Source: Fimbriosthenelais zetlandica
Taxonomy: Eukaryota
Assembly (NCBI GenBank): GCA_977030845.1
Contig: OZ365111.1
Location: 6,138,001-6,202,000 of the forward strand
Reading direction: 5' to 3'
Length of the DNA: 64,000 bases
Position numbers and translations under genes: made by a program. Position 1 is the first letter of the stretch. Each line of letters begins with the position of its first letter. Under the pieces are notes generated by a model. That model searched no databases. It saw only the letters and a program-made list of their open reading frames with translations, and was not told where the DNA came from. Below are positions 20,937-59,300 of the stretch, one piece after another.

Positions 20937-21109
20937 ATCCAGGACATTACAGTAGAGGAGGCTGACAGCTCAGAGACCAAGTCCGCTAAGGATGCGCTGC
21001 TTCTGTGGTGTCAGATGAAGACAGCCGGCTATCCCAACGTGAACGTGCGTAACTTTACCACCAGCTGGCGCGACGGCCTCGCCTTCAATGCTATCATCCA
21101 CAAACACAG
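20937..21109 (+). CDS. beta-Spec: beta-spectrin core exon 1 in window (CH2: IQDITVEE...IIHKH)
   Basis: ttacag acceptor, AG|gtaaac donor, phase 0 to 2. Confidence 0.95.
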
Positions 21110-27100: not shown

Positions 27101-30100
27101 ATATCGGCTATGCATTTATTTAAAAATAGACGTATACAGTACATATAAACTGAATGGTGGGATTATGAATAAAAATAATTATGGAAAAACTATAAAGAAC
27201 ACATTCGTGTTAACTGTACTAGTTTAAAATAACAGCATTGACCGTGTTAATGTAAATAAGAGCTATGGAAAAAATGGAATCAAATCAGAAAAATATAATT
27301 CATTATCTGTACTTAGCATTCAAAGAAAGAATATCTAATGAATAAATAAGGTCGAGGCTTGCATAACATTGAACGAATATGTCCAGAGAAAAAAGGTCGA
27401 ACCATTCAGCTTGACTAATTGAATACAGTTTATAGACCCATGCTTCAGTGAATCAGAAATTGAATCAAAATAAACCAGAACAAAAATAAATCTGAAAAAT
27501 AATTTAATTTGTGGAGTAATATTTTTTTCAAAATCTTTACCCCTCAGGATACAAACCGTGCGACCCTCAAGTGGTGAAGGACCGCATGGCACACCTAGAT
27601 GCGGCCTATGAAGAGCTCCAGTCGCTGGCGTCAGACCGGCGAGCCAAGCTGGAGGAATCACGCCGTCTGTGGCAGTTCTACTGGGACATGGCCGACGAAG
27701 AGGGCTGGATCCGCGAGAAGGAACAGCTCATGTCATCACCAGACCTGGGTCATGATCTAACTAGTGTACACCTGCTTCTTAATAAACATAAGGTAATCAT
27801 TTTAATTAATTTATATTTGATGAAATGTTTTTTATTTTATTCAATTTTTATTTTAACTGCTGCAAATGGAAAAATACTTAAGATTTAAAATTGAAATAAA
27901 ATCTTTATTCCCAAATATCGCAAGTTCATCAGAAAATTTCTTGAAATTGGACTATTAGACTTTTATCCCTGAAATTCTCATACAGATGTGATTGTCACAT
28001 TTATGGCATGTTGAATAGTAGACATTTTATGAATATTAGAAATTTTGCTCCTATTGGTTGAATCCGTGCTTTATGTATTTCTCCGAAATTCCCAAGTCCC
28101 CAAAACTTGAGATTTTTTTCTCATCAAATGACACTAAACTCCTATCCTGCATCGGGGAAAAAAACTTACAGAATGTTGTATGTTTCAAATGAGTTCCTTG
28201 AACTTATGGATGAAATGTGTTTGTGTAGAACGTAGATGAGCAGATACAGGCTCGGTTCGCGGACCATCAAGCGTCTATTAAACCCATATCTGACTCAGTG
28301 GATGCTGTAATGAACCCAGACTCGCCGGTAAATTAGTTAATAAAGGCCCAGGATTAAACCCTTCATCCACAGGTTAAGCTGCCACCAGTATAACTATAAG
28401 ATTGGACATCCAAGGGTTAATTAAGCCATACCGCTTAGATTACTCTAAGTCGACCCAAATGTGTTATTTTTTCCTAAATATATATAGTAGATATATCCTA
28501 GTGAATCCTAATTCAAAATGTTTTCAACTTTTTTTCAACAATCAAAGGCGCTAGTAACTGCCACCAGTATACGCTTGGACATTTGAGGGTTAATTAAGCC
28601 ATGCCCCTTAGATTACTCTAAGTCTAAGTCGACCCAAATGTATTATTTTTCCTGAATATAAGAAGATACATGTATATCATGATAGTAAATCCTAATTCAA
28701 ATTTCAACATTCAAGTTTTTGTCATCAACGCCTGTACAAATGCCATAAATATCTTAGTAAAACCCAGACAGTTTACTTAGTATTAAGCATTTGGTAGATA
28801 TTTTAGATAAGCCTTATATTATAAATAATATAAAAGTTCTTAGGGGAAAATATTGTAAATTGTAACTTCAAATCTCTAAAAAAAAAATCTGTAACAAGTA
28901 TAATTTGTCATGGACCTCAGATCAAGTCATTGACATTGCAATGTTTTGTTTTGTAAAGTTATGTCAAAGGATTTTCAGATTTTAGTGGAAACCCTGGTTA
29001 ATTTTCAACCGAAAAAAAATCCTTTCAAGATATACTAACAGCAAAATTTGTATTTTTCAGTCTAATGAGGACGGCATGCAAGCCCGACACTCACACCTTC
29101 AATCAGTAATGCAAGTCGGAGAAGACCTTATCAAGGCGGGCAACCTGGGCGCCGACAAGATTCAGGAACGCATCAACGAGATTAATGGACAGTGGGACAA
29201 CCTCATCGACCTTGCCGCTTATCGCAAGAAGCGCCTTCTGGAGGCTGTCGACTTCTATCAGGTACCTTTTTTTTGAACGAAAATATTTTTTTTTTGTTGT
29301 AAATCTATATTTATTCAGGAGGTACAAGAATGATACAAATCCCAATAACCACGTGTAATGACATAACATCTAGAAAAATACAGAAAATTAATACAATGAT
29401 ATCATACATGTTATGGTGGGATGGATCGATGTCACTAGATTCTGGATTTGGAATAGAAAAATTAAAAACCGATTATCAATGTCCTGACAGAATAAGATTA
29501 CTAGGTAAGGAGTATATTTTGTCCATAGAAATGTTCTGGGGAGTTAAAGGGATATGCAATATGTACATTAATTGGGGTTTATTTGTAGCCTAGCATCAGA
29601 ACTGTACACTTAAAATTTGGTACCCATTGATCATAAGAAAAATATAAAGGAAATCCTGCATTGTTTTAGGAACCAGAATATGTAATATCTGAAGAGAAAT
29701 ATCAAGAAAAACTTAGTTTATAAATTTTAATCTGATGGCCGCCATATTTTTAAAAATCACACCAGGATTTAACGTTGTCTGTGCTGATGATCAACTCTGT
29801 CCAGTCAGAGTGCTAGCTCAACTCTGTACAATGGGGGCCCCTATAAAAGATAAAAGATCTGCCAAATCTGTGCTGACAGTTATGTCAAAGATCCATTCAA
29901 TAGTGTCAATTACTGTACTGACAGCGTGTTTTCTCTTGCTTGTCAGACAACCCTGTTTGTTCCTGAAACGAAAAATTAAAACAAATCTATTTTCTAATGT
30001 TTCAGTTCTTCGCTGACGCGGATGATGTAGATACATGGATGTTGGACACACTGAGACTCGTGTCCAGTGAAGATGTCGGTCGCGACGAGGCATCGGTACA

Positions 30101-33100
30101 AGCACTACTGAAAAAACACAAGGTACAGTGAAAAAAAAAACAAAAAAAACCCACACGTCAAGCATGACTCGTGTTCTAATTATTAAAACAGTTGTTCTCC
30201 CATTCATAATAGCTACATGTTGTCCACTTATTTCATTATTATTAGTGCTTCTTTGACATAAAGTTTTAATGCAGCCATTCCTGTATTGATGTTATTAAAA
30301 ATATTCTTATCGTTTATAATGCCCGCAGTTTTGACTCCCTTTCACTTCATAATCACTTTTGCCTATCTGATCAGATTCATTCATTGATATATGAAAAGAA
30401 AACATCCTGTGTTTTTAACATTCCTTGAACATATCACTTTTAACGATCGTTCTGAATGTGTTCTATTTGAGTAATGAAAATATATCGGTACTAATTTTTC
30501 TCTCGCTACACTCCAATGATTATCTTCTATTTTTTTTGTATTTGAAGAGAAAGAATTTTGTCTATTCATTTTTTCTCCCCTCAAAAAAATAAGGGAAAAT
30601 GTTCTTTCTTAATGTGCCTCCTCTCAAACCTGCATGTAAAAATCTTTTGGCCAGATCCCTTTCAAGTGTTAACATCTTCAGATTGAAAATGTTGAACTTA
30701 AAGCGATTCCTTTCCAATGGATAATATCTCAATTTTGATAATTGGGATATTATACATTACTGGGTAAAATTCCACTTACATGGTGTAAAGGGGAAAAAAT
30801 ACATTTAGGGCTTTTGGATCTTTGCCGTATTTTGTATTTTTGATGTGGATTTTTTTCTCATTTTGGGAGGTGTGACTACTGACTGCTTGCATGCAGTGTG
30901 CAACCTATAGTAGAATACTTCAATATTCTACATGGTTCTGTTTCTCTTAACAACGATCGCTTCGTTCACTGCTCACTCCAAAAATAACCCAATTCATCCT
31001 CTTCGAAATTAAGAAATTCATCAGTTTTCCCCTTCTAAATTTTCCAAACCAAAAAATACATTTTATTGATACATTCCATTGTTTTCTATGGAAATGTATG
31101 ATTTTTTTTATTTTTTTTTTTATAATAATAATTTTGTGATTCTTGTGGACGAAGGTATTGGTTGTTGGTGGCTCCCCACTTGCCACAGGCTTTGGGCAAT
31201 TAATTTTTTTGTACTGGATCCAAAAAAAATCCAAATATATAATAATATAAACCAACTTAACTAGGAGTGAAAATAGGAGAGGAAAGAGGCGAGCTGGGTG
31301 TGGCTAGCAGAGATTCCTAACAAGCTGTGTTGTGCCCATGTGTTTTCAGAGAATTGAAGATGACCTCTTTGCACAGCAACCTGTGAGTGCATGAGAAGAC
31401 CTTTTTTCTTCTTCTTCTACTTCTTCCTACTCCTTCCTCCTCTCCTCAATCTATCCCTATCCTTGTGTTCAACTACTGCATTATACGCTGCTGTGATGTT
31501 ACTGCTAATTTTTTTTTTTTTTTTTTTTTAATAAATTTAGACCAGCATTAATTTCTGGTATCTATTGTTATGTCTGTTATAACATCTAGTTTTTGTTCTG
31601 GTTTGAGTTTGATTAATATTTTTGACGTTAATTTGTTGATATGCTTCCCAATCATTTGTTTGGATTGAATCAAGTTTTTGGACTGAACTACTGACAGTGT
31701 TATGATTGTTTGCGCTCATAAAAAAAATCACTCCCTGTGACCTGGATAAATCACAAAATAGTGTCAAACCAGCCAAGTGGGCTCTTGCACATACATTTTT
31801 CTCTGTTGCAAATTCTAAAAAAACATCATTATTGCTAAATTTGTAAAATTGTGTAAAGTAATACCATTGTTCACATGTTCAAAGGTACATGTATATGTAA
31901 AACAAGTTTATATTATAAGTTTATATTATCTTCAAAATTATAAGTTTATATATCTTCAAAATTATGTGGGAGAAAAATTCTTTCAAAATTGAAATTTATA
32001 AAAGATGAATTTAACAGACGCAAGAGCCTTGGTTGAGACACTTTTCCCTGTGTTTTTTTTTGTCCCAATGATTTGATGTGCTGAGCACAAGAAGGCTCAG
32101 AATGTGGCATTATCATCAGTCAAATAAAACAAAATCAAGATGCGTAATTTTCTGCATGGAAAGCATGGATCTCGGGCATGTGAGACTGGGGCATGCCCCC
32201 AGAAACAAACCCTGTAAATATAAGTGCAAGGTGGAAGCTGTAAATGTTTACGAATTAAGGGGTGAACAAAATTCCAGGTGGAGGAACTGTGATTACTACT
32301 AGCATTGTGAATGCACATTTGACTAAATCGTTTTGGGGAAAAATAACTGGAATTCTTTGTGTGTTTAGATGTTAAGATGTTGAAATTTTTGTTCTTATTC
32401 ATTGTGGCAAACCCTGGGGCCTTTGGTCCCATGGATGTTATACATTTTGGTGGTTGAAATTCTCTATTTTGAAAAGAACCTTTTAGCATTACAATCGAAT
32501 GTCCTATGTGTCTATATTATGTAGAAATATGACCGAAATTTACCAATGTCTCAATTTTCCATTTGAACCTCATTACGTTCTGTTCGTGTCCAACCCCATG
32601 TGTAATAGATATTACGTTCGTTGGCAGTCTTCCAAAGTCCCGAGTTATTGCCCACAATTTTCCCCTTTAAATTTCATGGATCGTTCTTTATATATTGTGG
32701 TAGGAAAATGGCTGGAAACGATATATTTAGTTATATAGTTATAAATTCAGGGGATAGTATGATGATTCAAAATATCTATTTCTCCTAAGTTTATGCTTGC
32801 GCACTGCTGAGAAAATAGCTTGGCTTTTATAAGAGGAATCATGCTCAAACCAGACGACAAAAAAAATAAAAATAAAATATTTAATTAAAATATAAAATGT
32901 CATCTCAGTAGCGGAGGCACTCTAGAAACGCTAAGACAGATTTACTTTACTGCTAGTATCAACCGTAGGTTCTAGATTGGCAAAAATTAATATCTGGAAA
33001 AAATGAACTCCAAATGAAGTGATTGATTGAAAGGGCATTGGTGTGTTTGGTTTAGAATTGCATGTACTTAGGAACAGAAGATAGAAACACTCGCTGAAAT

Positions 33101-36100
33101 CCTGGTTTGATTTGATGTAGTCATAGCATTCTTCTCTCGGTGTTATTCGGTAAATATTAAAAAAGAAGCTCTTTAAAATTTAAAAAAAAACTAACGCATG
33201 GTTCTTTCGTATCTAAGGGTTAGTTCGGTTTAAGGGGTTTAATCATTGTAATATTAATGTTAGACTACAGGGGTTTCTAAGTTCGCGTGGTCGCTGCTTT
33301 CATAGTTATTGTTTCTGTTGTTTTTTTGTACAAATTTCTGGCTAATTCTGGTTCGTTTTTGGTCGTTTTATAGGAGGTAAGCGACGAACTACAGAATTAC
33401 AACAGCGTGATCCAGGCTCTACACGAACAGGCAGCAAGCCTTGGAGAACAGGTAAACTGAAAATGATATTCATATCAACAAAAGACAAATCTCTGATCTG
33501 TCGTATCAAGATCAGAAATGCTTTATGTATTCAATACGAGTTACATTATTTGTATTAAAACACTGCCTGTCACTTCCCTGCCAGTCAAGGAATATGCTCC
33601 TTTTGCAATCAAGGAAAATGCCTTTTTTCCCAATCAAGGAAAAGGCATAATCCGAAAATAATTCCGATTCAGTTCATCATCTTCTAGGAACCCTATCAAA
33701 AGCAATTCATGTAAATTTGTTTTCAGGACAAGGAATCCCCCGAGGTGCTCGGACGCCTTGGATCCATCGACCGTCGCTATCAAGAGCTTCTGGAGCTAGC
33801 TAAACTCCGCAAACAGAGACTTCTCGACGCCCTGGCCCTATACAAACTGTACAATGAGGCTGATGGCGTGGAACAGTGGATCGCAGAAAAGGTGAGATAT
33901 TTGAAAAAAAATATTTATTTTGTACCTCCTGTTAAAGGATATTTGAAAAAAAAATTTCTTAATTTATATTTTGTACCTCCTGTTAAAATACAGTGGAACC
34001 AAAGATAACGGTCGCCTCACTATATCGAATATCTCGCATAATAATAAGTTATGCTCGTACCATTTCTACTAAATTATGTCTAAATAATATCTATATTCTC
34101 TAAATCGGTCGCCTCCCAAAATCTCCAGAAAGCTCTTACCAAAGACTAGTGACTCCCTCGATTGGCACTCAGCAAAAAGAGGACAGTACTAGGACTGGTC
34201 AACCCGGTGTCAGTATAATGTGACTGGGTGAGATATCATGTCATGTGCCTGCGACATGATACCTCAGTGAGGCAGCACTATAAAAGAGCCTTGGGCTCAC
34301 TCTCAGAAGTATGCAAAAACTGAAATATTATTGAAAGCGATGTTAAACCCAATTCAACTTCAACAACAATTTACTCTTTCCAGGAGAAACTTCTGGCATC
34401 CATGGAGCCTAGTGAGGACATTGAAGATGTGGAAATCCTCAAGGCCCGCTTCGCCACCTTTGATCAGGAGATGAACTCTAACGCCTCTAAAGTGGCCGTG
34501 GTCAACCAGCTGGCTCGCCAACTGCTGCACAACGAGCATCCCAACTCTGACGAGGTGATCGCTCGCCAGAACCAGCTCAACGGACGCTGGACGGAACTGC
34601 GCGAACTGGCCGACCGCAAACGAGACTCACTCAACCTGGCTCACGGTGTCACCACATGGCACATCGAATGCCAGGAAACCATTGTAAGTCAAACTTTTCT
34701 AATTCAGGGTTTTTTTTTCGGTCCTTGAAAAATGTCATTAGAAATTTTGTAAAACCGGGAATATTTTCATTCTTCTATGAACTGGGTGGACGACGAGCTT
34801 CTGCTCTTAGCCACCATAGATAGTAGTTAGTTCTGGCATGCCAACAAAAAGCCACCAAAATGTGACAATTATGGCCCGGGAATCGGCTTAAGTCAGGTAA
34901 AAATCTGGGAATTTAGTGACGCCAAAAACTTGGGAACTATTATTTTAAGTCCTGCGCCATGTGGGAATGCCTCGAAGATATAGATTGAGAATAATTTATT
35001 TCTTCTTTTCAGTCTTGGATTCGCGAGAAGGCCAAGTTGATAGAATCGACCGACGAACTTGGCAATGACCTTGCTGGTGTGATGACCCTACAACGTCGCT
35101 TGTCTGGTCTGGAACGTGACTTGGCTGCCATCCAAGCAAAAGTAAGTCAATAAACTCAAACCCATCATGAAATTAAAAGGATAAATAATGCTTAGAATAA
35201 TTGACATTTCACAAGAAATTTGTAAGCTAAATAAGTATTTTCATTTGTCCTTCTAAGGTATTGATAGATATACTTAAGACTATAATCCTTTCCGGCATAT
35301 ATTGACCGCTTTTGGGGCGTGACCGCGAGGAGGGAGGATACCTAATCATATTCTAAACCTATAAATTAACTTGTTACAGTTGGATTCACTGCAAGAAGAG
35401 GCAGACAGGCTGAAGGATCAGAAGCCAGAGGAAGCTGAGGCCATCCAGGTCAAGATCAATGAGATGACCGAGCTCTGGACTGAACTCAAGACCATGGTAA
35501 GAACAAAAAATAGCGATTACAAAATCTCAAAATAACTCAATTGAAGCCCTACCATTTGACTGCTCAGAGAAATAGTGAATGACTAAAGTTAAGAAAAAAA
35601 TTAAATTGGGGAAATATTGCATATGTATCGGTACATGTGTTCTGAGAAAATTGTCACAAATGATATTAGGAGCACAAAAATGAATATGAAAGAAATATCA
35701 TATGAAACAAACTATCAAGTGAAAGTATTTGTAAACTTGTAAAATTACAGGTCATTGTATTTGAATGAACCCAGGAATTACAATTAAATTAACCATCCCA
35801 GGAATAGGAAACAAAATTAAATCCTATGGGAAATTGTTACTATCTATGGGAAATTGTTACTTGCTAACAACCCAGGAATTTAATCTAAAATAATTTATTC
35901 CCCAACAGCTGAAGGTGCGTGACGAGCGCCTGGGAGAGGCCAGCGAACTGCAGCACTTCCTCCAGAACTTGGACCACTTCCAGAAGTGGCTGACCAAGAC
36001 CCAGACAACAGTGGCGAGCGAGGACATCCCTACAGACCTGGCCGAGGCCGAGAAACTCCTCAACCAACATCAACAGATCAAAGAGGAGATCGATGGCTAC

Positions 36101-39100
36101 TCCGACCAGTACAGACAGATGCACGAGTACGGCAACAAGGTGGTGGAGGGACAGACAGACGTGCAGCACATGTTCCTCAGAGAGGTAAACCCCCACCACC
36201 CCCACCCACGGTGCCCCCTTCCCCCCCCCCCCCCCCCCAAAAAAAAACAACCAAAAAAAACCAACAAAACCTCATCTCCCTTATTTCAGGGTCCCCAGTG
36301 ACTCTGGAAATGAGGGAAAACCTGGAAAATAAGTTTCATTTTTCCAGACAGGGAGTACTAAGGGAGTTTGAGAAAAACTTGAAAAATCTGGGAAAACTCA
36401 GGGAATTTCAGGGAACACTGACTCAGAAGGATATCTAATTGACGCATACAATCCCATGCCCGCCACTAAAGTTCAGGATGCTTCATATTTATATAATATC
36501 TTATGGTATTTCAGGGCTTACTTTATCGGGGGAAAATCAATTTTCATGAACTGCTGGGAACCCTGTAAAATTTGTCCGGGTGTGGAATAATTAGTTATAA
36601 ATTGTTCTATAATACATGTAGCTATCAATGGCTTTATAAAAATCTAGTAAAGACTTAAGTGACTTATTATTATATATAATCTAATAATTGCCCACTCTGG
36701 CCGAACCCCCAAGAGCCTGTTTCAAAACAAATATAAGCCATAAACTTAGCATTGCTCATAGTAATATTCCTTCCTCCAGCTTATTATTAAAATTGTTTGA
36801 TTAAAACAAAATTAAGTTCTTAATCGACTTAATTATTTTCTGTTAACAGCGTCTCAAGGCTCTGGACGACGGGTGGGCTGATGTACAGCGTATGTGGGAG
36901 AACAAGCAGCATCTTCTCTCCCAGAGTCTCAACCTCCAGGTTTGTTGATATTTTTTACTTGGAACAATAATATATTTTTCCAAACGTTTTTAGCTCACTC
37001 ACCAGAGAAGTCATTGTTAAAATTTTATTTTTTCAAATTTGTGAAATATTTGACAACATAACTGCAAGATATTCGAACCTTCGTAATAATAATTTAGTAG
37101 ACAATTGTGTGCCGACAGCGTGTTATCTCTCGTCCTGAGCGAATTGCTAACTGGAGTTTAGATATCATAATATTCATAATTCTTGTTAAATTTTTTATTC
37201 ACCTTCAGTACCGTGACGAATGAATGAGAAAAAAGTTTAATCAAATCATCAAATTTCAGGTATTCCTGCGTGATGCCAAACAAGCGGAGGTTCTGTTGAG
37301 TCAGCAAGACAACTTCCTATCCAAAGAGGAGGTTCCTGTAAGTATTTATATTCATTTTAACATAACGATTTTTATGCTGTTTTGGGGTTCATATATATGT
37401 AAATAGGTTGAAGTTTGTTGCCAAAAGTCAACTTGGACTGTCAGTTGAAAAACGGTCCAAATTTCTGAAACAACATATTGAGGGGTAATTGTTTAGAGGA
37501 AAAATGAAATGGGAACATCAGAAAAATACTTTTTTTTCCACAGCAACTTATAATTTAGCATTGTCTTTGGCATGTTGTTCAAACGTTTCCGTAGTATTCT
37601 ATTTGGCGGTTTAGAAAAAATAAACTTTTATTTTCCCCAGCTCTGATTGAATTCCTTCTTGCCACGCTGTCTTCATTTTCCCTCATGATATGCCTCTCAT
37701 TTTCCCCCCTCTTCCCCATCCCATGGACTCTTTATTTCCCAGAAATTCCCCCCCATTGTCTCTACTGGCCTGTTTCATATTTAGAGTGGTCTTTTCCTGT
37801 AGTTTATTCATTGTCGACCCCTCATTGAAGCTGCTATTTGTATCAAAAACCGAGCAATTCTTTTGATGAATGCCCCCAAAAATATTCAAAATTTTGCCTA
37901 TTTTTTTTTCGCTCTCAATGTGCAACTTGTTGATATTTACAGCATATTCATTTTCATATTTTTTTTATTAACCTAATTCAGCTTTGATAAAAAAAATTGA
38001 ATTTACCAAGTATGTTTTTTTATTTACCTTTTATTATTTTTGAGCAATACATATATTTTTGCTGATTATCTCAGGTGCTGAAAAAATGTATAGCTTGAGG
38101 GACACAGTGTTAATTGATATAATTAATAGAAAAATTATATTTTTGGACAGTTAGTTGATTCCAATAGCAGCATTTCATATTATATATACATTAGCCTTGG
38201 ATGGCATTGCTCATGTGGCTGTGTTGACGCAAAAGTAGCTGTGGCTTTTTACATATATATATCTCTCTCCGTTTTGTGTTCTGTTGCACAGACTACCCCT
38301 GGACTAGACAAACAGGTAAAAACCACTACCAACACCACCACCACCACCACCACTCCTTCAAGCCATGCTGGCTGGCAGAAATTTATGTCTCATTGTTATG
38401 TTGCCGCCAGATAATTGTGTACTTTGTCATCATGTCCAGCTGTGGCATTTATAATTGGTGCGTGCGTGCGTGTATGTACATCATGTCTTGTCTAATGGTG
38501 TTCACAAACAAAAACATTTTTTTTTAAATGTGGGTGTCATATATACGTGTTTAGAAACAAACCTGCAATCATTCATGCATGTCACTGTTGTTTTCCATCT
38601 CTCAACCTTATTCAGTGTTGATTTGGAGAAAAAAAAATTATTGAAAGTATTTGGTTTTTCCTCTTGTTACTTCTCTCTAAAGACACTTTCTCATCTGGGA
38701 TTTTGTGGGTGGTTTTCCTGGTAAAATGTCGCCCTTGTTAACCCATCCTCCTGCTGATCCCGATTCGTTAAGTTTTAAAGCGGCTCTATCACCGATCTGT
38801 AATGAGGACTATCTAAGCTTGGGATCAAAGCTTAAGAAGTTAACTAACACAAGTTCTAGTCACATTTGGCAGGTGCCTACAAAATTAAGAACAGAGGACC
38901 AAAAGATGAATCCAACAATACATCGAACTCTTTTTTCGTACAAGGAAAAAATCGGCGATAAAGTCGCTTTAAGAACAGAATTTAAGTAAAGCTATGATGA
39001 GAGACTTCAGAAATTGCTTGCCCTCACTCCACTCCCTTGCCCCCTCCCACCAGCCCAGGGGACTGCAGATAGGGTTTTCCCCAGAGGTATTAGGCCAAAA

Positions 39101-45100: not shown

Positions 45101-47326
45101 GATCCACCAGCCATTCATCCATCCATCTCCCATGATCCACCATCCACCCATCCATTCATCCACCCCCCCCCCCCCCCCCCAATCCATCCATCAATCAATT
45201 CACTAAATTATAACTTTCTCATCCAGGAAGGAGAGGAGCTCCTCCGACAGAAGCCTGAGATGGCCAGATCGGTGGAGCCGCGCATTGACGAACTGCGCAG
45301 ACAGTGGGAGGAGTTGGAACTAACGACCAAAGACAAGGGTGAGAAGCTGTTTGATGCTAACCGCCACGTGCTCTACGAACAGAGCTGTGACGACATCGAC
45401 GGCTGGATCAACGAGATCGAATCCCAGGTCGTGACCGAGGACACAGGCCACGACTTGACCACCGTCAACCTGCTTGTCCAAAAACAGAATGTAAGTGCGC
45501 TTTCCTATTGGTTAATATTTTATAGGCGCACTAGCTTGCCTACTAACGAATATAGTAAGCAGGGCTTCATTAGTTTTCCCTACTAAGAAATTTAGTTCGG
45601 TGTGGCTGCAGAAACCCTTCCTACTAAACAAGAAAACCTTTGATGATGTAAGTGACTTCGTTATTAGCGAAACTAATAACGGACTAAATTACATTAGATT
45701 TAAGAGGAAATGAATCGGTTCTTGGGATTTAATTCTCTAGGATAAATTAGATTAAAATTTTAAAAAATGCAAATACCGCATATATACAGCACTACGCAAT
45801 GTATCTAAATTATATGATTATGAATTTTTGTTTCTTATTATATCGACCCCCTATTCTAGGGTGGCTCTGTGTAATATTGAAGGGAATCTTGATATTCTAA
45901 ATATTTAAATTAGGTTCCCCTTGAACTTAGAACTCCTTAACTTACTGAAAAAAATGTTATTCATTAGGTCCACTGGGGAAAAGCTGATACGCAGAAAATT
46001 GAGATAAACTCCTCTAAAAAACAATTTTAAAAAACTTCATATGACTCTATGTGACAGATACCTGAATTCTTATTATTTTATTTATCAGATTTTGGAGTCG
46101 CAGCTGAAGATCAAGCAAGAACAAGTACAAGAGCTTGAAAGCCAGGCGTCACATCTGCGTGAGTTGGACCCCGACCGCGAAGAGGAGATCCGCGCGAGGA
46201 AGTCACGCGTGGAGGAGCGCTTCCGCAAGGTGCTGGCCCCTCTACAGCAGCGCAGAATGCAGCTGGAACGCGTGAAGAAAATCCAACAATTCCTTCGCGA
46301 TATCGAAGACGAGAAAATGTGGATCGAAGAGAAAGTGCCACAAGCCAAGAACGCCGACTTCGGTAATTCGTTACTGAGCGTACAAATGCTGGAGAAGAAA
46401 ACGCAGAGTCTGCAGAATGAGATTGACAGCCATGAGCCGAGGCTGCAGTCGGTGTATGATGTGGGTGAGGGGCTGATAGAGGAGGGCCACCCACAGAGCG
46501 GGGAATTCCAGGAGAAGCTGGACGACCTGAAGGATCGCTGGCAGGAACTGATGGATGCCATGCAGGGCAGGAAAAATAGGCTCCAGTTGTCAGAGGTTGC
46601 ACAACAGGTGAGCAATTTATATTAAAAAAAATTGTAAAAGAAACCCCCCCCCCCCCCCCAAAGAAAAATACAACAAAAAAATAATTTAGTTTCAATTCAG
46701 GATAAGATATACAGACTTACTAGTGTATTTTGATATGTAGTCGCATCATTTTTCGATGCAGTAAAATTGTTTGTTGTCCTTTGAAGTATTCTTGGCTTGA
46801 AGTACTTTTTCTATGCAATCAAATTGTTCCCCCCCCCACTTGAATAAATAAATGGGGCTTTGATTATGGAATTGGGCGCTCATAATATAGCCTATATGCG
46901 TTTTAAAATCAACATGTCTACCTTATAAAATTAATCTGCCATAAATTTTAAAGGTACTTTTAAAATTAAAATTCGAATTTTCAATTTAAAATTGTTCAGA
47001 TTTTTAAAATCTTGCTATATAAAATTGTTCCTCTGACTTTTAAAAGCTACTAATATAAAATTGTTTCTCTGCAGTACTTTTTCGATGCGGCTGAAGCCGA
47101 AGCATGGATGTCAGAGCAGGAGCTTTATATGATGGGGGAGGACAGAGCCAAGGACGAGATGGGTGCAGGGAACTTCCTCAACAAGCACGCCACACTTGAG
47201 AAGACCGTCGAGGACTTTGCTGAGACTGTGAGACAGCTCGGCGAGCGGAGTCGTCAACTCGCTGAGGAGGGACACCCCGACAGGTAACTCGACTAATCTT
47301 TCTTGCTCTACTGTAGTTATGTTGAC

Positions 47327-47369
<43 letters not shown>

Positions 47370-50300
47370 TATATATTTATTTAATATTTATACAGCTGCA
47401 ATTGGTCTCAGCCTGAAATGCTGCTTTTCTGGCCGCAGCTGTGCCAGATTGGAAATGCGGTCTTTGTCTTAAATGGTTTTAACAAAGTCTTAAATTTGTT
47501 GACGTCATTGCCGACGAAATTACTCACGATTTTTTCGATGATAACTGGCGATTTTGCCGACGATTCATTGTCAGAAAGTGTGTATTTTTGGTCTTAAAAA
47601 TGAAGATCATAGGTCTTAAAAAGTATGAAAAAAATCAAAATTTCCGAACCGCAGGAACCCTGATAAATATCCAACTATCTAAATACTCACGAAAGATACC
47701 GCTAGATATTAGAAATAATTTTTGAAATTTATTTGAAGCAACTAGGCATGTAAAAGAACAATTCCTGCAAGTCGAAAAAGTACCTCATTGTGTGCCGACA
47801 GCGTATTTCCTCTTGTCCTGAGACAGCTCTAAAATTGCTGACTGGAGGTTAAACAATAGGCCTATATAGTACAAACAAAAGTTGATATTTTCTGATGTGG
47901 GACGGACTTTTTTCATACTACTTTACCACTGGTATTAGGAAAAATAATTAATTTTTTCTTTACAAAAAATGAAACTTTCTCCGTTGGCCACTTTCAGTGC
48001 CCAAGTCGCTATCAAGCAGTCACAGGTCGACAAGCTGTATGCTTCACTCAAGGATCTGGCCCAAGAACGCCGTGGCAAGCTGGACGAAGTGCTGAAGCTG
48101 TACATGCTTAACAGAGAGATTGACGACCTGGAACAATGGATCGCTGAGAGAGAAGTGGTAGCTGGCTCACACGAACTGGGGCAGGACTACGAGCATGTCA
48201 CTGTGAGTTCTCAATACTAGAAAAATTACATCTTCAGATTCTCCTGAGAAATAAACTTGGCTTTATTTTGCTTCAAGAATTGAAAGCGCATTACATGTGT
48301 TTAAATGCAACCTTACTTTTCTACAAATACCAACATTTTAAACTGTCATACATTTTAAAATGTCGACCTACTTGAGCGGAATTATCACATGTAGTTCGGG
48401 AAGAGTAGGCCATTGTGTCGGGGAGGAGAGTAGAACATTGTCTCCCGACAGCGTGTTTCCACTTGTCATGAAATTGCTGACTGCTCATTAAACAATTATG
48501 AATATACCTACTTATTGTAGAAAATTTCCAGAATAATTCAAATAAAAAAAAAAACAACAAAAAAAAACAAAAAAACAAAACAATTTTGCATACTATTGTT
48601 AAAATACTTATCACATTTTCCATCAATACTATTTATTCCACAGATGTTGCGAGACCGCTTCAAGGAGTTTGCCCGTGACACAGAAACCATTGGCCAGGAG
48701 CGGGTGGCAGCAGTGAACGAAATCTGCGACCAACTCATCGGTGCCGGCCACTCTGACGCTGCTACCATCGCCGAATGGAAAGATCAGATCAACGAGTCTT
48801 GGGCCGATCTATTGGAACTTATCGACACACGTACACAGATGCTTGCTGCCTCATGGGAACTTCACAAGTTCTTCCATGACTGCAAGGAGACTCTTGATAG
48901 AATTTATGTGAGTAGAATTTTCCGATAATTTTCTTTTCTATGAATTAATGATAAGCGTTAACAGGCTTCAGAAACTCTTGGAAGGTTCTGCAAAGTATTA
49001 TAAAACACATAGTTTCAGTACTTGCATAATCTATGGGAAACACAACAGACTCCAAAAAAATATTCAGAAAATGTGATTTTCCCATAAAAAATATTAAATT
49101 TCATCTGTAGGGTATTGGAAGCCGAAAATGTAACTATTATCTCAAATTTGGTTCTAAAAAATGTGGTTTCTCTAATTGTATAAACCATGGATAAACTCTC
49201 CCATAATCTTGCTTTGATATGACAAATATTGATAGATTTTTGGTTGGATTTGCAGGAAAAACAGCACACTATTCCCGAAGAGCTGGGCAAAGATGCCAAG
49301 AGTGTAGCTGCCCTTCAAAGACGACATGCTACTTTCGAACATGACCTCGTTACACTAGGATCACAAGTAAGTTCCTCTCGTTTTTTTTTGTCCGAACCAA
49401 AGACTTTGGTACTAGGCACTCAGAGATAAGAGGACAGTACTTGGACTGGTTGGCCTGGTGTCAGGATAATGTACCGGGTGAGGTATCTTGTCATGTGTAT
49501 GCAACATAATACCTCAGTGACACTGCACTATAAAAGACCCTAGGTATGGCTCACCTCACAAACTTGTACGCATGAGATACATTTCTGAAAAATTGCTGAA
49601 GTACGTTAAAGCTCATTGAACGAACAAACAATATTTTATATATATTTCCTTAGATCTGGAAATACTGGTAATTCAGTTGTAAAGCGACTGTAAAACCGAG
49701 ACATTACCTGGATAATAAAGATTTGATTTAAAAAAAAATATTTTGAACATTGCAGGTACAACAGGTACAGGAGGACGCCAGTAACTTGCTGGTGGCTTAC
49801 TCTGGAGACAAGGCCCGTGAGATCCAGGACCGTGAGACAGAGGTCGTGAACGCGTGGAGGAACCTCCAGATCAATGTGGAGGAGAGGAAGAACAAACTAG
49901 GAGACACCAGCGATCTATACAGGTCAGCCTTTTCACGATTCCCAGTGACTCTGGAAAGTTATAAGGACAACCTGGAAAATAGGTTTCACTTTTTCCAGAC
50001 AGGGAAATTTGAGAAAAACTGGAAAAATCAGGGAAAAAATCTGAGAAAGCTATGGGAATTCTGTTTTCATGAACTGCTGGGAACCCTGCTTTTAATCCCC
50101 AACCCACACACACATGCAAACAAATATTTTCCTCCTACGTTCAAACCTAACATTTGGATCTTTTAACCTCAGACAGAATCTGATTATAAATCACGACTGT
50201 CCTGAAAAATCTAACCCCAACCTCCAATAAACAATCTCTAGACAATTATCTTAGTAATTTGTCAATTTTACTGGACCTTCCGTCCTGTGGTAATTTATGA

Positions 50301-53300
50301 GTGAAATTTGTTTAAAAAAATCTTTATACAAAAATTATTTTGTATACAGGATTTAAATTTATGTGTGAAATTTGTTTTAAAAAATCTTTATACAAAAAGT
50401 GTGAAATTTTTTTTTTCCTTCAGGTTCTTCAACCTGGTACGAGACCTTCAGTTGTGGATGAGTGACATCCAGCGCCAGATGAGCACACAGGAGAAGCCGA
50501 GAGACGTGTCCGGCGTCGAGCTGCTCATGAACAACCACCAAAGTCTGAAGGCAGAGATAGACGCCCGCGAGGAGAACTTTGCCATCTGTCTAAATCTCGG
50601 CCGCGACTTGCTTCACCGCAAGCACTACAGACACCCAGAGGTGAGTGGACAGTTTTATTGTTAAGCCAGGAACACACTAATCCGATTCTCCAAACCGTCG
50701 CCAACCGATACCCGATTTCTAATGGCATCTAAAGATTGAAATTTTGTCAGTGGTTAACGTTACCTATGTGTAAAGGACTTCAAATTACAAGCATTTGGTG
50801 TGAATAGAAATATACTTTCTGACAGCTATCGGATGGCGCCGGATAGAAAATCGGATTAGTGTGTTCCATGATTTGTGTCAACCTAAATACGAGGGCTATA
50901 TGAAGTCGAAAAAGTAACAATTATTTGAATAATGGACCTGAAAACTCCAATTTCTTTCTGGGAATGATAATTTACATACACTACTGTTCATCGGGTGGGT
51001 AAATAAAATGATATATTGATGTCTATTTTACAAGAAAAACCCATGGAAATGATACACTACTGTTCATCAGGTGGTTAAAATCATCGGTGATAGAGCCCCT
51101 TTAAGTTAACTGAACCAGGAATACTAATTGAATTATCTATTCAACTGTTTATTCCAACTATATTTCAGGTGAGAGACAAATTAATTGGACTGGGAACACA
51201 GAGAGGAGAGATGATGGAACATTGGGATGGATGCTGGGAGTACCTCCAACTTAGTAAGTATCCAATTAAGAAATAAAAGAATCCTATACACTAAAATGAT
51301 TATCATTAAATAAAATATTAACATTTAAAAAACTAGTTCAGTAGACAAAAGATCAGCAATTAGTATTAAACTGTGTTACGTTTATGTCTTGCAATTAACA
51401 CCGGAGATTGACAACAAATGGTAACTAACTGAAATCTAATGCAAACCTTTCAACATTGCAGTATTGGAGGTCTACCAATTTGCCAGAGACGCATCCGTGG
51501 CAGAGGCTTGGCTTGCAGCACATGAGCCATACTTACAAAGTAGAGATTTTGGCGTAAGTTCTCTTTTCTTGGTTTTTGAACTGTACTAAATTGAAGATCT
51601 CGGATGCATTAATGCCTAAATTTACAGTTTCAAAATACATATATATATATATAAATAATAGGATTACTTATAGTATGTCCCAAGATTAGTCCTACATTTG
51701 AAAATTGAATTTCAGGATTCACTAGATGCAGTGGAAGCACTCATCAAAAAACACGAAGCCTTTGAGAAGTCTGCTGCCACCCAAGAGGAAAGATTCGCCG
51801 CTCTTGAGCGGCTAACGACGGTAAGTCTTAAACGTGTATTCATTCAAGTTTCCCACAGTCGTGGAGAAACCTGAAAAATGGAATGGAAATATATCAAAAA
51901 GTTGTTTAAAATGGTCACGGAAAATTTGTAGAATTTATTTTTGTAAAATGTTAAATTTTTATATTTGAAATTGATTGTATAAATCTTCAAAAAATGTTCT
52001 ACTACTTTAACCAAGAATGATCTCTCTCCTTTCAGTTTGAGATAAAAGACCGAGAAAAGAGGAAAGAAGAAGAGTTTCGACGAGAACATCCAGACGCGCC
52101 TTACCCTCAAAAACAAAGTTATGTTCAGAAATATACAGAAGAGTTCATACCACCACCAGAACCAGAGTAAGTACATTGAGTATCATTTCTTAAAAAATAT
52201 ATAGCCCGTTAATCTTAACTTCCCGAGGACTTCTCCTTCTACCCATGTTCTATATTACATTCAATATGAGGGAAAATCACTGGAAACTCGAGTTGACCAC
52301 ATTAAATGACTGTTGTCATTTCAATTTTCAGAACGGAAATTACAATCAGGTAACCTTGTCATGGAAGCCCAGGTTTTTGATTGAGATTCGTTCAAATGAA
52401 TAATAATATTTCTATGAACCCATTGAATACCCCCAAGATCATCAGCGCATGATATTTTTACTTGACCTCAGCACTGCACTGGAATGCAGATAGTATTTAC
52501 CATTTCCAGCCGAGATAATATATTATTTTGATTTGAAAATCTGAGATTTACTATAATAATACAATTAGGTATTTTAATCCGATTTAAATCCTAGTTTTGC
52601 ACTTTTTGCAATGCCATCTGAGATCGACCCTTCGAATGAATTCAGCTTCCCAATTATCTTTACTTTGCGACCACCGTTCCCCAATTCTTTTAGAACCCCA
52701 AACCAGAAAATAGCCACGGTTTTCTATTTAATTTTTATATTGATCCAAGATTTTTAAATTTCACCCCATTTTGTTGATATTTGGACCCCTAAGCATGATG
52801 TTCCTCTTTATTGCCCCGACTACCAATTTTTTGGATGTTTTTTGAAAAACTTTCAATATCCCTTTCCTCATCCATCAATGTTGCTGGTGTTTTCAGACCG
52901 GAACCGGAACCGGAACCAGAACCACAGCAATCGTCACCGGATCGTGACGAGGCTGGAGGAGCCGGCGAACCCGAGTCTGTTATAAATGGAGAGAAAGAAC
53001 ACGAAGACAGTCCCCGAGGAACTGCCGCTGAAGGTAAGAGAGAAACGCGTACCCCCGCTTGGGCGTCTTTAGTTTCTATAGGTGTTGTGGTCCGTCGGCG
53101 AGGGATCCCCAAAAGGTGCTTCCCAATGAAACTGAAGCCCCTGAGATTTTTTTTTGTAACAGGGGAGCTTCTTTGTTTCTCAATCCAGCGAACTTTCTTA
53201 CTCTTAGCCAGTGTCTCTGATTCTTGAGAGAACATGCCCAGCTGGAGTGATTTCCCCTATGTTGTGTAGTCATCTCTGCCCGTGGGGCAGTGAAGCATGC

Positions 53301-56300
53301 TCAGTCGGAATACCTTTGACTATAGGGTAAGCTGATGCATGCCTGCAATTTGCAGATTAAATTATTTTATGCATGTATTGTAAAAACTGGTAATGCCCAA
53401 GAAAGCTCGGCCCAAATCGTAAAAAAAAGCAAGGTTTGTAATTTTAAATACAATTTTTCACGTAGTTGTTTCTTTTAATTTCTGCATGGGTTTATTCATC
53501 AATGTAGTATACAGCACCTTTTCGTTTAGTTTAAAGTGCAGTATTATCGTGCATGATTCTTTAATTTAAGCTATTTGCACTATAAATATAAATGTTAATC
53601 GAATGTTTCTGAAGTACACATTTTTATTAGCATTTATGGTATATCTTTGCATGTTTGTTAACTTTTGTTTTTACTGTTATTCTTGATTGTTGAATGTGAG
53701 TTTGTCTGTGTATGAGATTTAATCTTATAAGTCATCGCCATAAAAACCTTTCAAATTTTAAGATTTTCATATCTGATATTAAGTTTGATATTAAGACTAG
53801 TGTCTATGGACTGAAAAAAAAGTAATTTTTGACGCCTTCTATAAGACAAGTTATTTTAGATCTTTTTGCGTACCATTGAAATAGAGTGTGAATGGCTGAC
53901 AACTATGCAACTTCAAAATCTCATCCAAAGTACTTTTGAAATTCGTTATCTAAAATGAAGTCATTTATAAATCTTCCTGCATATTTTGGACTTAATTACA
54001 ATTTCTGTTCAATTTTGAAACGAAAGCATGTGTTCGTAATTTTCAAAATTAACGAGAGAAAAGTTTTATAACTCATTATGCTTCCAATCGTCACAAATTT
54101 ATTGTATTTAAGTTTTCCTTTAATTAACCCATCCTATATTAGTTGTCTAGTAGTGCCTATTAGCAGTAGTTCTAACCTCGGTGGTGGCGTCCACTTGCAT
54201 TGTTAGTAGCGTTCCCTAGTTGCACTTAATTTTCATCAGACTGCTTCATTCACGAGTGAACATAATCATGGTAAGTGAAGATTAGACTCTTAAACTCTTT
54301 GCCAACTTGTGAACGGATGTCCCCACGGCATCACTCGAAGAAGTTATCATGCATGAGCCAGCGCTCTTTGCCATCTCTCCAAAACTCAGCAATGGAGTTG
54401 TCATGGAACTCTATCAAGACTGTCCTCCTTAAATTCCATGCGTTATGGAGTGCAGTTTGTTTTGGAGAGTGCAAAGGAGTGCAATCATGATCACTATGAA
54501 TGTGATGCCCTGGGCTAGAAACCCCCTGGAGTTTATAACTGTTTTACCAAAGAACACATGATGGCACAGGGTATACTGAAACCCAACCAAACCCACTATA
54601 GTTAGGACTAGACCAAGTGTGAGGAGTGGCGAGAGTGGAAAGTTTGTATAGAAAGTATTAGAGCCAAGTAGTTGAAGCTACAAGTAAGGTTCTTATTATT
54701 ATGATGGTCAGAAGAAGGTCCTACTCCTATGGATATTGATGAGGTACCGTCTGATACTGGGAGGAAGTTCCATGAACCAGACGTACCCGATATCCCGCCT
54801 GAACCTGTGGAGCATATACCACCTCCAGCGATATTACCCGCTACACCACGAACCACAGCGCCACCACCCACTGCCACTACAACTGCCTCTTCTTCTAGCA
54901 AACCCTCCACGGTTAAAGGTGAATACTAACAAAGAAATTAACCAGACGCGATATCGGTCATTCCATCTCAGCCTACTGTTTGCCCACTTAACAAAGCAAG
55001 GGCAAGCGGTATACCTCGAAAATGGTCATTCATTGCAGGGTTCCTAGCCACTCAGGAAATCAGGGAAAAACTGGAGTTTCACATTTACCGGACAGGGAAA
55101 ACTCGGGGAATTTGAGAAAAAAAATGCAAAAATCGGGGTATTTCAACACTGATTTAGAAGGATAATCTTTCGGAGGTTGACGCGTGCCCGCCACTGAAGT
55201 TCAGAGTGCTTCATATGACTACAATATCTGGGAACCCTGCATTGGAAAATGGTCTGTGATGCATGTGGTGGTTGGAAAAAATGCCCTTTGAATCTAGTAG
55301 CCATTGAAAAATGGTCTCTTGATTGAAATAAGTGATCATTGAATGGTGGTCTCTGAAATAAGTGACCATTGAAATAAGGCCTCAATGTGTGGCTGTTTGA
55401 CCACGTCTCTGGACACCCTCCTGAAGTTCCAAATCAAATAAATTGCTGATATGTTTGGCACTAAAAACTATGTTCATATCTATGGCAATTCATTGTATGC
55501 CAAGATGCTTGGCAATTCATTGTATGCTGAGATGGAATGAGCCTGCAAGTGGGATGACTGCAACCGACAGAGAAGGGTATACATCCTGTGTTATGGACTT
55601 TTCTTTTAACATTGCATGCATCTTTCTTTTCTCTGTGATACACTATTCATTTAACTGTTCTCTTATTTGGTATTGTATCTTCTTTTTTCCAATGTCTGTA
55701 TCCTGGTAATCAATATTCATAAAATCCTGGTACTTAAATACGTACGTCCTGACTAGTAGACCTTGGCAAGCAATTTCAGACTGGCTGCCTGTCGACAATA
55801 TTCATTTTCCATCCATTTTCCAACTATATTTTCCATGAATACACCGAAATTCAAAATTGTATTCGCAGAAATATCTCTAAATTCCTGGGGCGTTGCTTGC
55901 TGGGGAAAACTGCCTTTTGACTAAGGTTATCTATCTATAATCAAGCATGACGGTAGCTTTAGACATTTTTAACTGTGCCCAGAAAATGGAACAGTTAATT
56001 CATATTATATATCTCTGTCTCTGCGTATGTTCGACATTAGACATCAATTCCATCGTGTTTTAGACATTTCCCCATTTGTCGATGACTTTGTCCGAGTCTT
56101 TGATGTTTGGCTTTACCTTTAGAAATTATTTTTACTTGTAGAAATTACCAGAGATTTTTCATCTTATTCATATATTATATGGATGATAGTCATATTGTCC
56201 TCGTCCAAGAGTCATCTTTATGTTCCGTATTTGATCTAAATTTCACTGTTGGTTTATCAACGTGCGTAGTTGAACAGTGTATGACATTGGATAAAGAAAA

Positions 56301-59300
56301 AATCTCACTCTCTTAGTAGCGCCTCAAATAATATGAATCTCGCATACTAATCCATTGAACTTATGTTACTCAAACAAGTGGCCATAAGCATGATGATGTT
56401 ATGCCTTGCAACCTTAAACTATTCTAATATTTTATTTGTGACTGACTGATAAAAACTAAGAACAAACCCAGGACTAAAAAAAAGTACTACTATTAGACCA
56501 GGATCAGCACTGCTGAGTTTTCTGTTTGTATAGTTAAAGTCTTAGTTATTCACTCCTTCTGATTGATACGTTTGATTCTCTTTGTGTGTTTGCACTCTGG
56601 TTTGGGGGTGGGACCCTGCGAGCAGTATTTCCGCGGAAAATGCCAAAATCTGATTCCGCTCTAGGTGCTCTGGGTCCCCGATATCGTACCCTAACCTAAC
56701 CCAAAACCCCACACCATTGGGACTCGGAGCACTTGGGGCTGTCCTTATATATTGGGATTGGGTCATTTTATTGTATTATTGTGCATTCCCACTCCGACCT
56801 CCCATGTGCTCGCGGGGCTGCCCACTTGCCAAGGGCAGAGTGCTTTGTGTGTTAAGTTGCGATGATGCCCTTTCTCACTTCACCAGTGGAACGTCCCCGC
56901 ACCCAAGAGACGCCCCGAAAAGCCCAGGCAGAACGCCGCTCAGAACCGAGCACCTCCAAGAGTAAGTAACTCTGCTGGGAAGCAGAAAAAGAACAGCCAC
57001 ATAAGGGAAAGGAGACTCTCAGCACAAAACTCCTTCCATAGCTTTGCTGGGCTTTACGCTGAACTCTTATGTGGTCTAGGGAGGCTCACCAATGATAGGA
57101 AACAAAAAGAAAAAAATCTTAAATCCCCAATCAGTGATTCTTACTACCTATCAATGCTTACTTTCCACGCCTTTTTCATTATTGAATTTATGCTTTTCCA
57201 AGATTACTCACCTTATTTATCAATACGATCTGTATTAAGTTAAATGTTCATTTCAGAATTATGCTATCAATCAGTAACATATATATAAGTTTCCTGAGTA
57301 AATTATTCTAAAATTTGTTATGTACTCAAACATTTATTCATAAAGATTTAAGAACACGACAAAAGTGACTAGATGCACATTAATCATTTTCACAGTGATC
57401 ACCTTGTACACTTTTCAATTCCATTATTAAGTCATTTCTGATAAAAAAAAAATCCCTCATTCCCAAACAATCAACGAGTCACACACACACACTGATATGT
57501 TCAAACTCCATTTAAATTTTCCATTTGACATTATATTATATCTGCATGTTCTGTGTACATATATAGTTTATTTTCATCTTTGCATGGTATAATATTTTTT
57601 TCCTCGACTTCAACCCATGAATGTAGGTGGTCAGAATTGACCCCCCACTCATTTTCTCTCTTTTTCCCCTTCCTGCATGCTCGCTACTAATAGAAATAAA
57701 ACCCCAAACTGGTGGAAGGGTTCCACACAAGGAGGTGTCGGACGATTATGAAAATAATATCGATTGTTTTAATCACCTTTCTGTGTTTAATGTGAGGTTT
57801 GTTTTGTTCTTTTCTCTTGCGTTTGGCAGAAGAGAAACGCTCCAAATCTCCCTTCAAGCGCAGGGCGCGCTCAATGGAACGTGAAGACATAAAACCTGTA
57901 GCCTTGCCCCCAGGTAAAACTCTGCATGGCCTTTGGTGGTCAGTCTGTGCCTTAGGCACAGAGACAGAGTGAGCACTTCGCACTGTTACCTAGAGTGGCA
58001 CCGGCGCTCTCAATATACCTATATACAGCTCTATATATATCACCAGCTCTTCGTTCTAGCCCGGGAATTTTGCATTTTAAAGAAACATCACAATCAATGA
58101 TAGAACATCACAAGTGTGGGATATCCAGTGAAAAATGCCATAACACAAATGTGGTTTATTAAAAACTTCCATAACAAGTCTTGACCATAAGTGTTATAGC
58201 GTATTCCACAAGATTGTCACGTGCGAGTGATATTCTATATTTATAACACAGTGCAGTATACTTCACTCATGTGGCAGAAACCCATGTGTGGGATATGAGG
58301 AAAATATATTATAAGTACATATTTTGCTCGAAATATGAGACCGATACTGACTGTGGAATAAATACTCATGTGTTTTTCACATATATATGGTACATACTTG
58401 ATGTACGTGAAACATGTTTACACGGTGGCAGCGATCTTGGTTGATGGGCTTTGCATATCGCATGGCCAGAAATGTTAATATTTATTTTGAAGACCAAAAA
58501 GCATTTTAGATATTTTAAAGTTATAAAATAAATCATGATTCAGGAGATTATTCTAATGGTTTATCTTTCTGGATCATGCACGGGGTTGACTTGGGACTTA
58601 TGTTCATGTTACTCAGTTTTAGTTATTCATTTGAATCTTGGGTTGATTTTACCCATTTCGCGACGGTCTTTCTCAGTGCGAAAAGGTTAAAGTTTATTAC
58701 AAATTGGGAACTATGGAAAGATGGAGACTGAGCAACATGGACATGTCGGTCTGGGTTGTGATACTGACAAGTAAGGCTGTCTCTGCCTCTGTCACTTCAC
58801 TGGGGATATGGCTAACAATGGATCCAATGTTCTGGAAATATCACCTGTCAACTGTTGGACATTCTCTGCATGAACCCTCGTAACGCACACCTCTCGTAAA
58901 GTAAACATCAATCGCACATTGCTAGTTAGAAAACCATATGGTACCCCTAGGTTTACCAGAGATTTGTACTGTTGAGTAGATCAATAAAGGTACTGTAGAG
59001 GAATAAAATAGTGAAATGATAATGATAAAAAAAAGTCTAAACTTCTAGTTGTTGAGGTTGCCATATGGTATTTAGTGAGCTGTATTCAGCTAGTTATCTA
59101 GACCTGTGGAGATGTGCAATAGGGAGGGTTCATATTTGTCTTGGTCTTCTGGCAATCTTGGTTTGGCGGAAAACTTTATTTTATCTGGGTTAATATTGGC
59201 ATCTTTGTCTTTCCTTGCTCGGGGCTTCATCCCTTCTAAATGCTATGATCACATTTTGATCGCTCATTTGGAAATAAATGATTTTTGATTTGACATTGTT

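Follow-up and report, generated by a model that had tools for sequence, protein, structure and literature searches.

Organization of the beta-spectrin gene

The stretch analysed here (the window) comprises 64,000 nucleotides (nt) of contig OZ365111.1 of Fimbriosthenelais zetlandica (assembly GCA_977030845.1) and carries on its + strand a conventional beta-spectrin gene with CH, spectrin-repeat and PH domains, extending, as far as it lies within the window, over ~20.9–61.5 kb. An initial annotation, made from the letters of the window, had proposed nine small exons within the introns of this gene. The solid result of the comparisons described below is a set of six conserved small exons, one of which is, by its occurrence in other genomes, an old microexon.

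The gene model was referenced to a fish beta-spectrin (P0025), the best full-length relative found, with which colinear tblastn/blastp matches give 51% identity over 1,843 amino acids (aa); the closest named protein fragment is from a bivalve (74% over one exon). Open segments and tblastn provide colinear matches between the CH-domain exon (20958–21109) and the end of the C-terminal exon near 61444. Pfam CH is matched on the CH-domain exon (E 4.6e-12), demonstrating the presence of the N-terminal calponin-homology domain, and Pfam Spectrin on three exons, the long repeat array being colinear with known beta-spectrins. The C-terminal PH domain is present as a match to Pfam PH_9 at 60751–60882 (E 1.2e-7), the PH region of the fish protein being matched by tblastn as well. 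When the junctions were refined from GT-AG sites together with the reference alignment, 29 introns resulted, the majority of them in phase 0; conservation served to position the first PH exon and the last three core exons, and the three remaining C-terminal (PH-region) exons lie at 60.4–61.4 kb. The total is 36 core exons, the number also reached by the initial annotation.

For comparison we used a contig of European Nucleotide Archive (ENA) entry ERZ25767047, merged from loci L003, L001 and L004 and referred to below as the relative; it is unannotated and was reached via exon-sized open reading frames (ORFs) in a protein collection. Its exons are ~90% identical to those of the window at the amino-acid level, and its introns do not align with those of the window. 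Five further loci (L005–L009) represent more distant genomes. Two contigs of ERZ25767047, L001 and L002, hold near-identical copies of the gene, which are either haplotigs or the products of a very recent duplication.

Chance background and intronic conservation

Within the 33,061 nt of introns there are 4,639 AG..GT segments of 9–210 nt with a length divisible by three, 1,104 of which are stop-free in the phase of their own intron. Thirty of the latter also have core-like splice sites, i.e. a pyrimidine-rich YAG acceptor and a donor no worse than the weakest core donors (simple splice-site scores were used; position-weight matrices derived from 32 sites were overfitted). The proposed candidates fall within these 30, alongside ~20 others. 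Eight of the nine segments could be located, the 51-nt one being ambiguous, and all eight have the AG/GT ends, lengths and phases given in the initial annotation, but the combination of AG/GT ends, a length divisible by three and a matching phase is not above chance as a criterion. Six candidates rise above chance because they are conserved across species, evidence that the reading of the single sequence did not have. Spotting exons in one sequence is therefore of limited value: this gene holds ~1,100 chance segments, and cross-species comparison was what separated six real exons from three decoys.

Alignment of the window to the relative by blastn recovers almost exclusively exons. The strong intronic exceptions, at 31298–31410 (89%, 113 nt) and 38271–38323 (87%, 53 nt), coincide exactly with the 33-nt and 24-nt candidates. 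Beyond these islands there are four short, weak intronic matches (E 0.003–0.04), two of them upstream of the 24-nt exon and two not colinear. A window-wide tblastx comparison with the relative for further hidden exons gave nothing convincing, with no other colinear open match. The conserved islands match no Rfam family, and their RNA folding z-scores (−0.27 and −0.46) give no structural signal.

The 24-nt microexon

The 24-nt exon encodes the peptide TTPGLDKQ in both the window and the relative; the four nucleotide differences between them are all synonymous, and the AG and GT are kept. In three of the more distant genomes the orthologous intron likewise carries a 24-nt AG/GT exon, encoding TTPGQDRQ (L006), STPGLARQ (L007) and ATPSVARQ (L009), and the pattern x-T-P-G/S-x-x-K/R-Q is thus retained in five genomes while the nucleotides diverge. 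None of 1,068 decoys (24-nt AG..GT stop-free segments, taken from both strands of all loci) reaches the scores of the L006 or L007 peptides, whereas the L009 match, located in an orthologous intron of 280 nt, has a score (18) that three decoys also attain. In L005 the orthologous intron runs past the end of the locus. Judged by these matches, the 24-nt exon is an old microexon common to at least five genomes.

Its peptide is inserted into the A-B loop, between helices A and B, of about repeat 9. In all genomes the preceding exon closes with ...EEVP or ...ESIP; because its last residue is proline, inclusion of the 24-nt exon creates a conserved P-x-T-P, which would resemble the site of a proline-directed kinase. 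The placement of the rod exons in loops, as initially proposed, therefore holds for the 24-nt exon; the 33-nt and 99-nt exons both fall within helix B.

Splicing motifs accompany the 24-nt exon. In the window a UGC lies 7 nt upstream and a TGCATG 261 nt downstream (38576), and in four of the five genomes a UGC 7–40 nt upstream is combined with a TGCATG 53–261 nt downstream. L007 shares with the window and the relative a UGC at −7, while in L006 it is found at −18 to −40. Two short colinear segments nearly identical to the relative, 37830–37848 and 38154–38171, lie 120–460 nt upstream of the exon and may act as regulatory elements of the intron.

The 33-nt and 99-nt exons of the rod

The 33-nt exon of the relative encodes RIEDDLNAQQP, with a change of F (window) to N brought about by two substitutions in one codon. 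Its donor, GTGAGTGCATG, carries TGCATG at 31388–31393; the donor sequence GTGAGTGCATGAGAAGACC... is the same in the window and the relative, with conservation of the TGCATG at +5 and of the AG and GT, and a UGC ~15 nt upstream of the exon is also conserved in the relative. Identity of the intronic flanks was compared with that of 29 core exons (upstream −53 to −4, downstream +7 to +56), for which the medians are 54% upstream and 52% downstream and the maxima 68% and 66%. At 84% upstream and 76% downstream, the flanks of the 33-nt exon, which include GUGAGUGCAUG at the donor, are unusually conserved, exceeding those of all 29 core exons. High flank conservation is typical of regulated exons. 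The exon interrupts its helix rather than a loop. It has no counterpart in L005, L006, L007 (where there is no intron at the site) or L009, and its absence from these more distant loci implies that it is younger than the 24-nt exon.

The counterpart of the 99-nt exon in the orthologous intron of the relative is a 90-nt open, AG/GT-bounded segment, with 13 of 33 aa identical and a length difference divisible by three. Nucleotide similarity has been lost and the counterpart was recovered by tblastx, identifying the exon as fast-evolving; it was not found in L005 or L006. Both the 33-nt and the 99-nt exons are younger, being seen only in the lineage of the window and in the close relative. An origin of the 99-nt exon as a duplicated piece of spectrin repeat was considered and rejected, the alignment scores being within the range of shuffled peptides. 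Read-through of its donor (28328–28350) meets a stop after two codons, followed by AATAAA, in the window only; a mini-spectrin produced in this way is not supported, as the relative shares neither the stop nor the AATAAA.

Linker exons before the PH domain

The 137-nt constitutive exon (52897–53033) ends in phase 1, and the first PH exon starts in phase 1. The 207-, 75- and 84-nt exons between them are phase-1 symmetric, and any combination of them therefore keeps the frame. That the linker is built of such exons had been recognized in the initial annotation, and all three have open AG/GT counterparts in the relative (Table 1); where window and relative differ in exon length (the 99-, 207- and 75-nt exons), they do so by multiples of three. 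The upstream flank of the 75-nt exon is 74% identical, above that of every core exon, and it is the sole linker exon with an unusually conserved upstream flank. In the more distant genomes the linker exons were either not found or would lie beyond the ends of the loci compared. The three exons are real but may be constitutive.

The introns of the linker are rich in TGCATG, which occurs 13 times in 53034–60046 (1.85/kb) versus nine times in the rest of the gene (0.28/kb), a 6.6-fold enrichment; for the linker, the mean count over 500 first-order Markov simulations was 2.7 and the highest 9. In the relative the densities are 1.66/kb in the linker introns versus 0.49/kb elsewhere (3.4-fold). The relative also possesses a cluster of five TGCATG, ~400–790 nt downstream of the exon orthologous to the 137-nt exon, corresponding to the cluster in the window (Table 1) even though the introns do not align. 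A TGCATG 10 nt downstream of the 84-nt exon is found in the window only. The TGCATG and UGC motifs that the initial annotation reported at several of the exons are in place for the 33-, 24-, 57- and 84-nt segments.

Candidates lacking a counterpart

Searches of the relative by blastn-short, tblastx and enumeration revealed no counterpart of the 18-nt candidate, the 57-nt candidate or any 51-nt segment. Which segment the 51-nt exon would be is ambiguous, as the linker intron contains 19 AG..GT segments of this length, including eight that lack stops in phase 1; one corresponds to use of a donor internal to the 84-nt exon, and the GT of this donor is GC in the relative. All three candidates are most likely chance pseudo-exons. 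The proposed isoform lacking the PH domain is unsupported, since the 57-nt exon with its stop is not conserved in the relative, and no stop or terminal exon upstream of the PH exons is shared with it. Of the nine small exons thought to be hidden in the introns, six are conserved, two of them true microexons.

Table 1. Positions in the window of the beta-spectrin gene and of the exons, candidates and motifs discussed
Feature	Position	Strand	Remarks
Beta-spectrin gene	20958..61444	+	CH exon, spectrin-repeat exons, linker, PH exons, stop near 61444
99-nt exon, phase 0	28229..28327	+	33 aa; helix B of about repeat 4; counterpart in the close relative only
Conserved intronic island around the 33-nt microexon	31298..31410	+	blastn versus relative, 89%; better conserved than most core exons
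33-nt microexon, phase 0	31350..31382	+	31/33 nt identical in relative; helix B of about repeat 5
24-nt microexon, phase 0, TTPGLDKQ	38292..38315	+	Synonymous differences versus relative; orthologous exons in L006, L007, L009
18-nt candidate, phase 2	52332..52349	+	Good splice sites; no counterpart in the orthologous 484-nt intron of the relative (blastn, tblastx, peptide)
57-nt candidate, phase 1	53270..53326	+	In-frame stop, proposed poison or terminal exon; no counterpart in relative
Cluster of five TGCATG	53336..53653	+	300–620 nt downstream of the constitutive 137-nt exon
207-nt exon, phase 1	54712..54918	+	Pro/Thr-rich disordered linker; 210-nt open AG/GT counterpart at the same place in relative, 20/69 aa identical, conserved splice-site contexts
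75-nt exon, phase 1	56887..56961	+	Linker; 81-nt open AG/GT counterpart in relative, 15/26 aa identical
84-nt exon, phase 1	57830..57913	+	Linker, basic peptide; 84-nt open AG/GT counterpart in relative, 24/27 aa identical

Proposed regulation and alternative explanations

We favor, with a probability of roughly 65%, the view that this beta-spectrin gene has six real small exons, as conservation indicates, with the two microexons being regulated cassettes and the linker exons being under Rbfox control, as their motifs suggest. As conservation shows, the ORF view misses three coding exons in the rod (99, 33 and 24 nt) and three in the linker preceding the PH domain (207, 75 and 84 nt). The conserved motifs of the two microexons suggest that these may be cassettes included where a UGC-reading Srrm-type factor is present together with an Rbfox protein bound to the downstream UGCAUG, with neurons or muscle as the likeliest tissues. 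For the phase-1 linker exons, the enrichment of UGCAUG in the introns of two species suggests that they might be used combinatorially under the control of Rbfox. Since the motifs are conserved, it is reasonable to suppose that Rbfox and Srrm-type factors regulate these exons.

Several observations weigh against this proposal. L009 has the 24-nt microexon but neither UGC nor TGCATG near it, and L008 is without a counterpart of the exon. The immediate flanks of the 24-nt exon are only 58% and 52% identical between window and relative, and the flanks of the 207-, 84- and 99-nt exons are no better conserved than those of core exons. The protein fragments retrieved at the 24-nt junction are all genomic exon ORFs, none being a junction-spanning transcript product, and a search with the full-length fish beta-spectrin yielded fish proteins only. 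Of ~200 long annotated proteins of the beta-spectrin family, mostly from (distant) fish, none has an insert at the three rod sites. Finally, the motif counts of the window and its close relative are not fully independent.

A more far-reaching version, which we regard as tentative, is that invertebrate beta-spectrin possesses, in the 24-nt exon, an ancient neural or muscle microexon so far missing from annotations, the inclusion of which, set by Srrm-type and Rbfox factors, would add a P-x-T-P phospho-acceptor to the A-B loop of repeat 9 and thereby act as a tissue-specific switch in the rod, with the linker being tuned combinatorially by Rbfox.

It is rather unlikely that the conserved small exons are all ordinary constitutive ones, hidden by their shortness or divergence, with no tissue-specific programme. 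This explanation applies above all to the 207-, 84- and 99-nt exons, which may be constitutive, their flank conservation being within the core-exon range. Beta-spectrins, moreover, normally have a linker that separates the PH domain from the last repeat. For the 33-nt and 75-nt exons it is countered by flank conservation exceeding that of all 29 core exons, and more generally by the conservation of UGCAUG and UGC at positions typical of regulated exons. The pattern of absence also argues against constitutive use: the 24-nt exon is missing from L008, the 33- and 99-nt exons are missing from more distant relatives in which the flanking protein is intact, and the ~200 annotated proteins are without the inserts.

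That the islands do not code for protein, but act as intronic enhancers, splicing silencers or small RNA genes and are never spliced into mRNA, is very improbable. The island around the 33-nt exon does reach well past the proposed exon boundaries, but in every species the AG and GT are at identical positions and the lengths are divisible by three, as are the indels in the 99-, 207- and 75-nt exons. The wholly synonymous divergence of the 24-nt exon between window and relative, the retention of its peptide in five genomes, and the negative Rfam and folding results likewise argue against non-coding function. The least credible explanation, that all nine are chance AG..GT segments and their conservation alignment noise, has in its favor the 1,104 frame-compatible stop-free segments that arise by chance and the behavior of the 18-, 57- and 51-nt candidates, for which it appears to stand, but for the other six it is refuted, to judge from the confinement of intronic blastn matches to two islands on candidates plus the four weak ones, the lack of comparable peptides among the decoys and the lack of other colinear open matches by tblastx.

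Comparison with known splicing programmes and spectrins

Microexons are defined as exons of 3–27 nt, or of up to 51 nt in wider usage. At 24 and 33 nt, in phase 0 and with lengths divisible by three, the two short rod exons have the length and frame of eMIC-type microexons, the 33-nt exon by the wider definition only, being over the strict limit of 27 nt. They further resemble the bilaterian eMIC programme (Srrm234/SRRM3/SRRM4; PMC8797185) in being frame-preserving exons of a cytoskeletal gene, in the strong conservation of the peptide and, for the 33-nt exon, of the flanking intron, in the insertion of the 24-nt exon into a surface loop, and in having a UGC close to the 3′ splice site, which has been described for eMIC-dependent exons of both flies and mammals (PMC8797185). 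The L009 microexon, without a nearby UGC, does not follow this pattern.

With regard to Rbfox-activated cassettes, a conserved (U)GCAUG within ~300 nt downstream is found for the 33-nt exon (at +5) and for the 24-nt exon (at +53 to +261 in four of five genomes), and the enrichment of TGCATG in the linker introns of two species with non-aligning introns is a further likeness. However, a motif that overlaps the donor region, as that of the 33-nt exon does, could equally affect U1 pairing.

The beta-I and beta-II spectrins have long and short C-terminal forms. Vertebrate beta-spectrins are alternatively spliced, the isoforms of beta-IV being designated Sigma1–Sigma4 (PMC2174349). The C-terminal isoforms of vertebrates vary mainly in the segment that links the PH domain to the last repeat, and it is this segment that here contains the frame-neutral exons. 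Unlike in the vertebrate genes, no alternative terminal exon is common to the window and the relative, the proposed form without a PH domain depending on the unconserved 57-nt stop exon, and none of the proteins examined shows a vertebrate rod-domain microexon at these sites. No account of a microexon in a beta-spectrin emerged from full-text literature searches.

The spectrin rod is generally regarded as an invariant spacer. A short insert that is kept in several invertebrate genomes, occupies a defined loop and contains a conserved Thr-Pro would, if true, suggest that the rod is regulated at this position, and the ancestral bilaterian microexon programme would gain a cytoskeletal target. The 24-, 33- and 99-nt exons are likely to be overlooked in gene models of the present genome and its relatives.

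Other features of the locus

Two single exons of the window, 46089–46607 and 25837–26416, are each split by an intron in the relative (~380 nt and ~230 nt; L001 9674–10052), which suggests that introns were gained or lost recently, after these close species diverged. In L005, five tandem partial matches (5616–6209) to the exon homologous to 30006–30122 of the window look like a local tandem repeat of part of the exon. Beyond the gene, three blocks within 62435–63187, located 1–1.7 kb past the stop codon, are 75–90% conserved with the relative and probably represent elements of the 3′ untranslated region or a neighboring gene.

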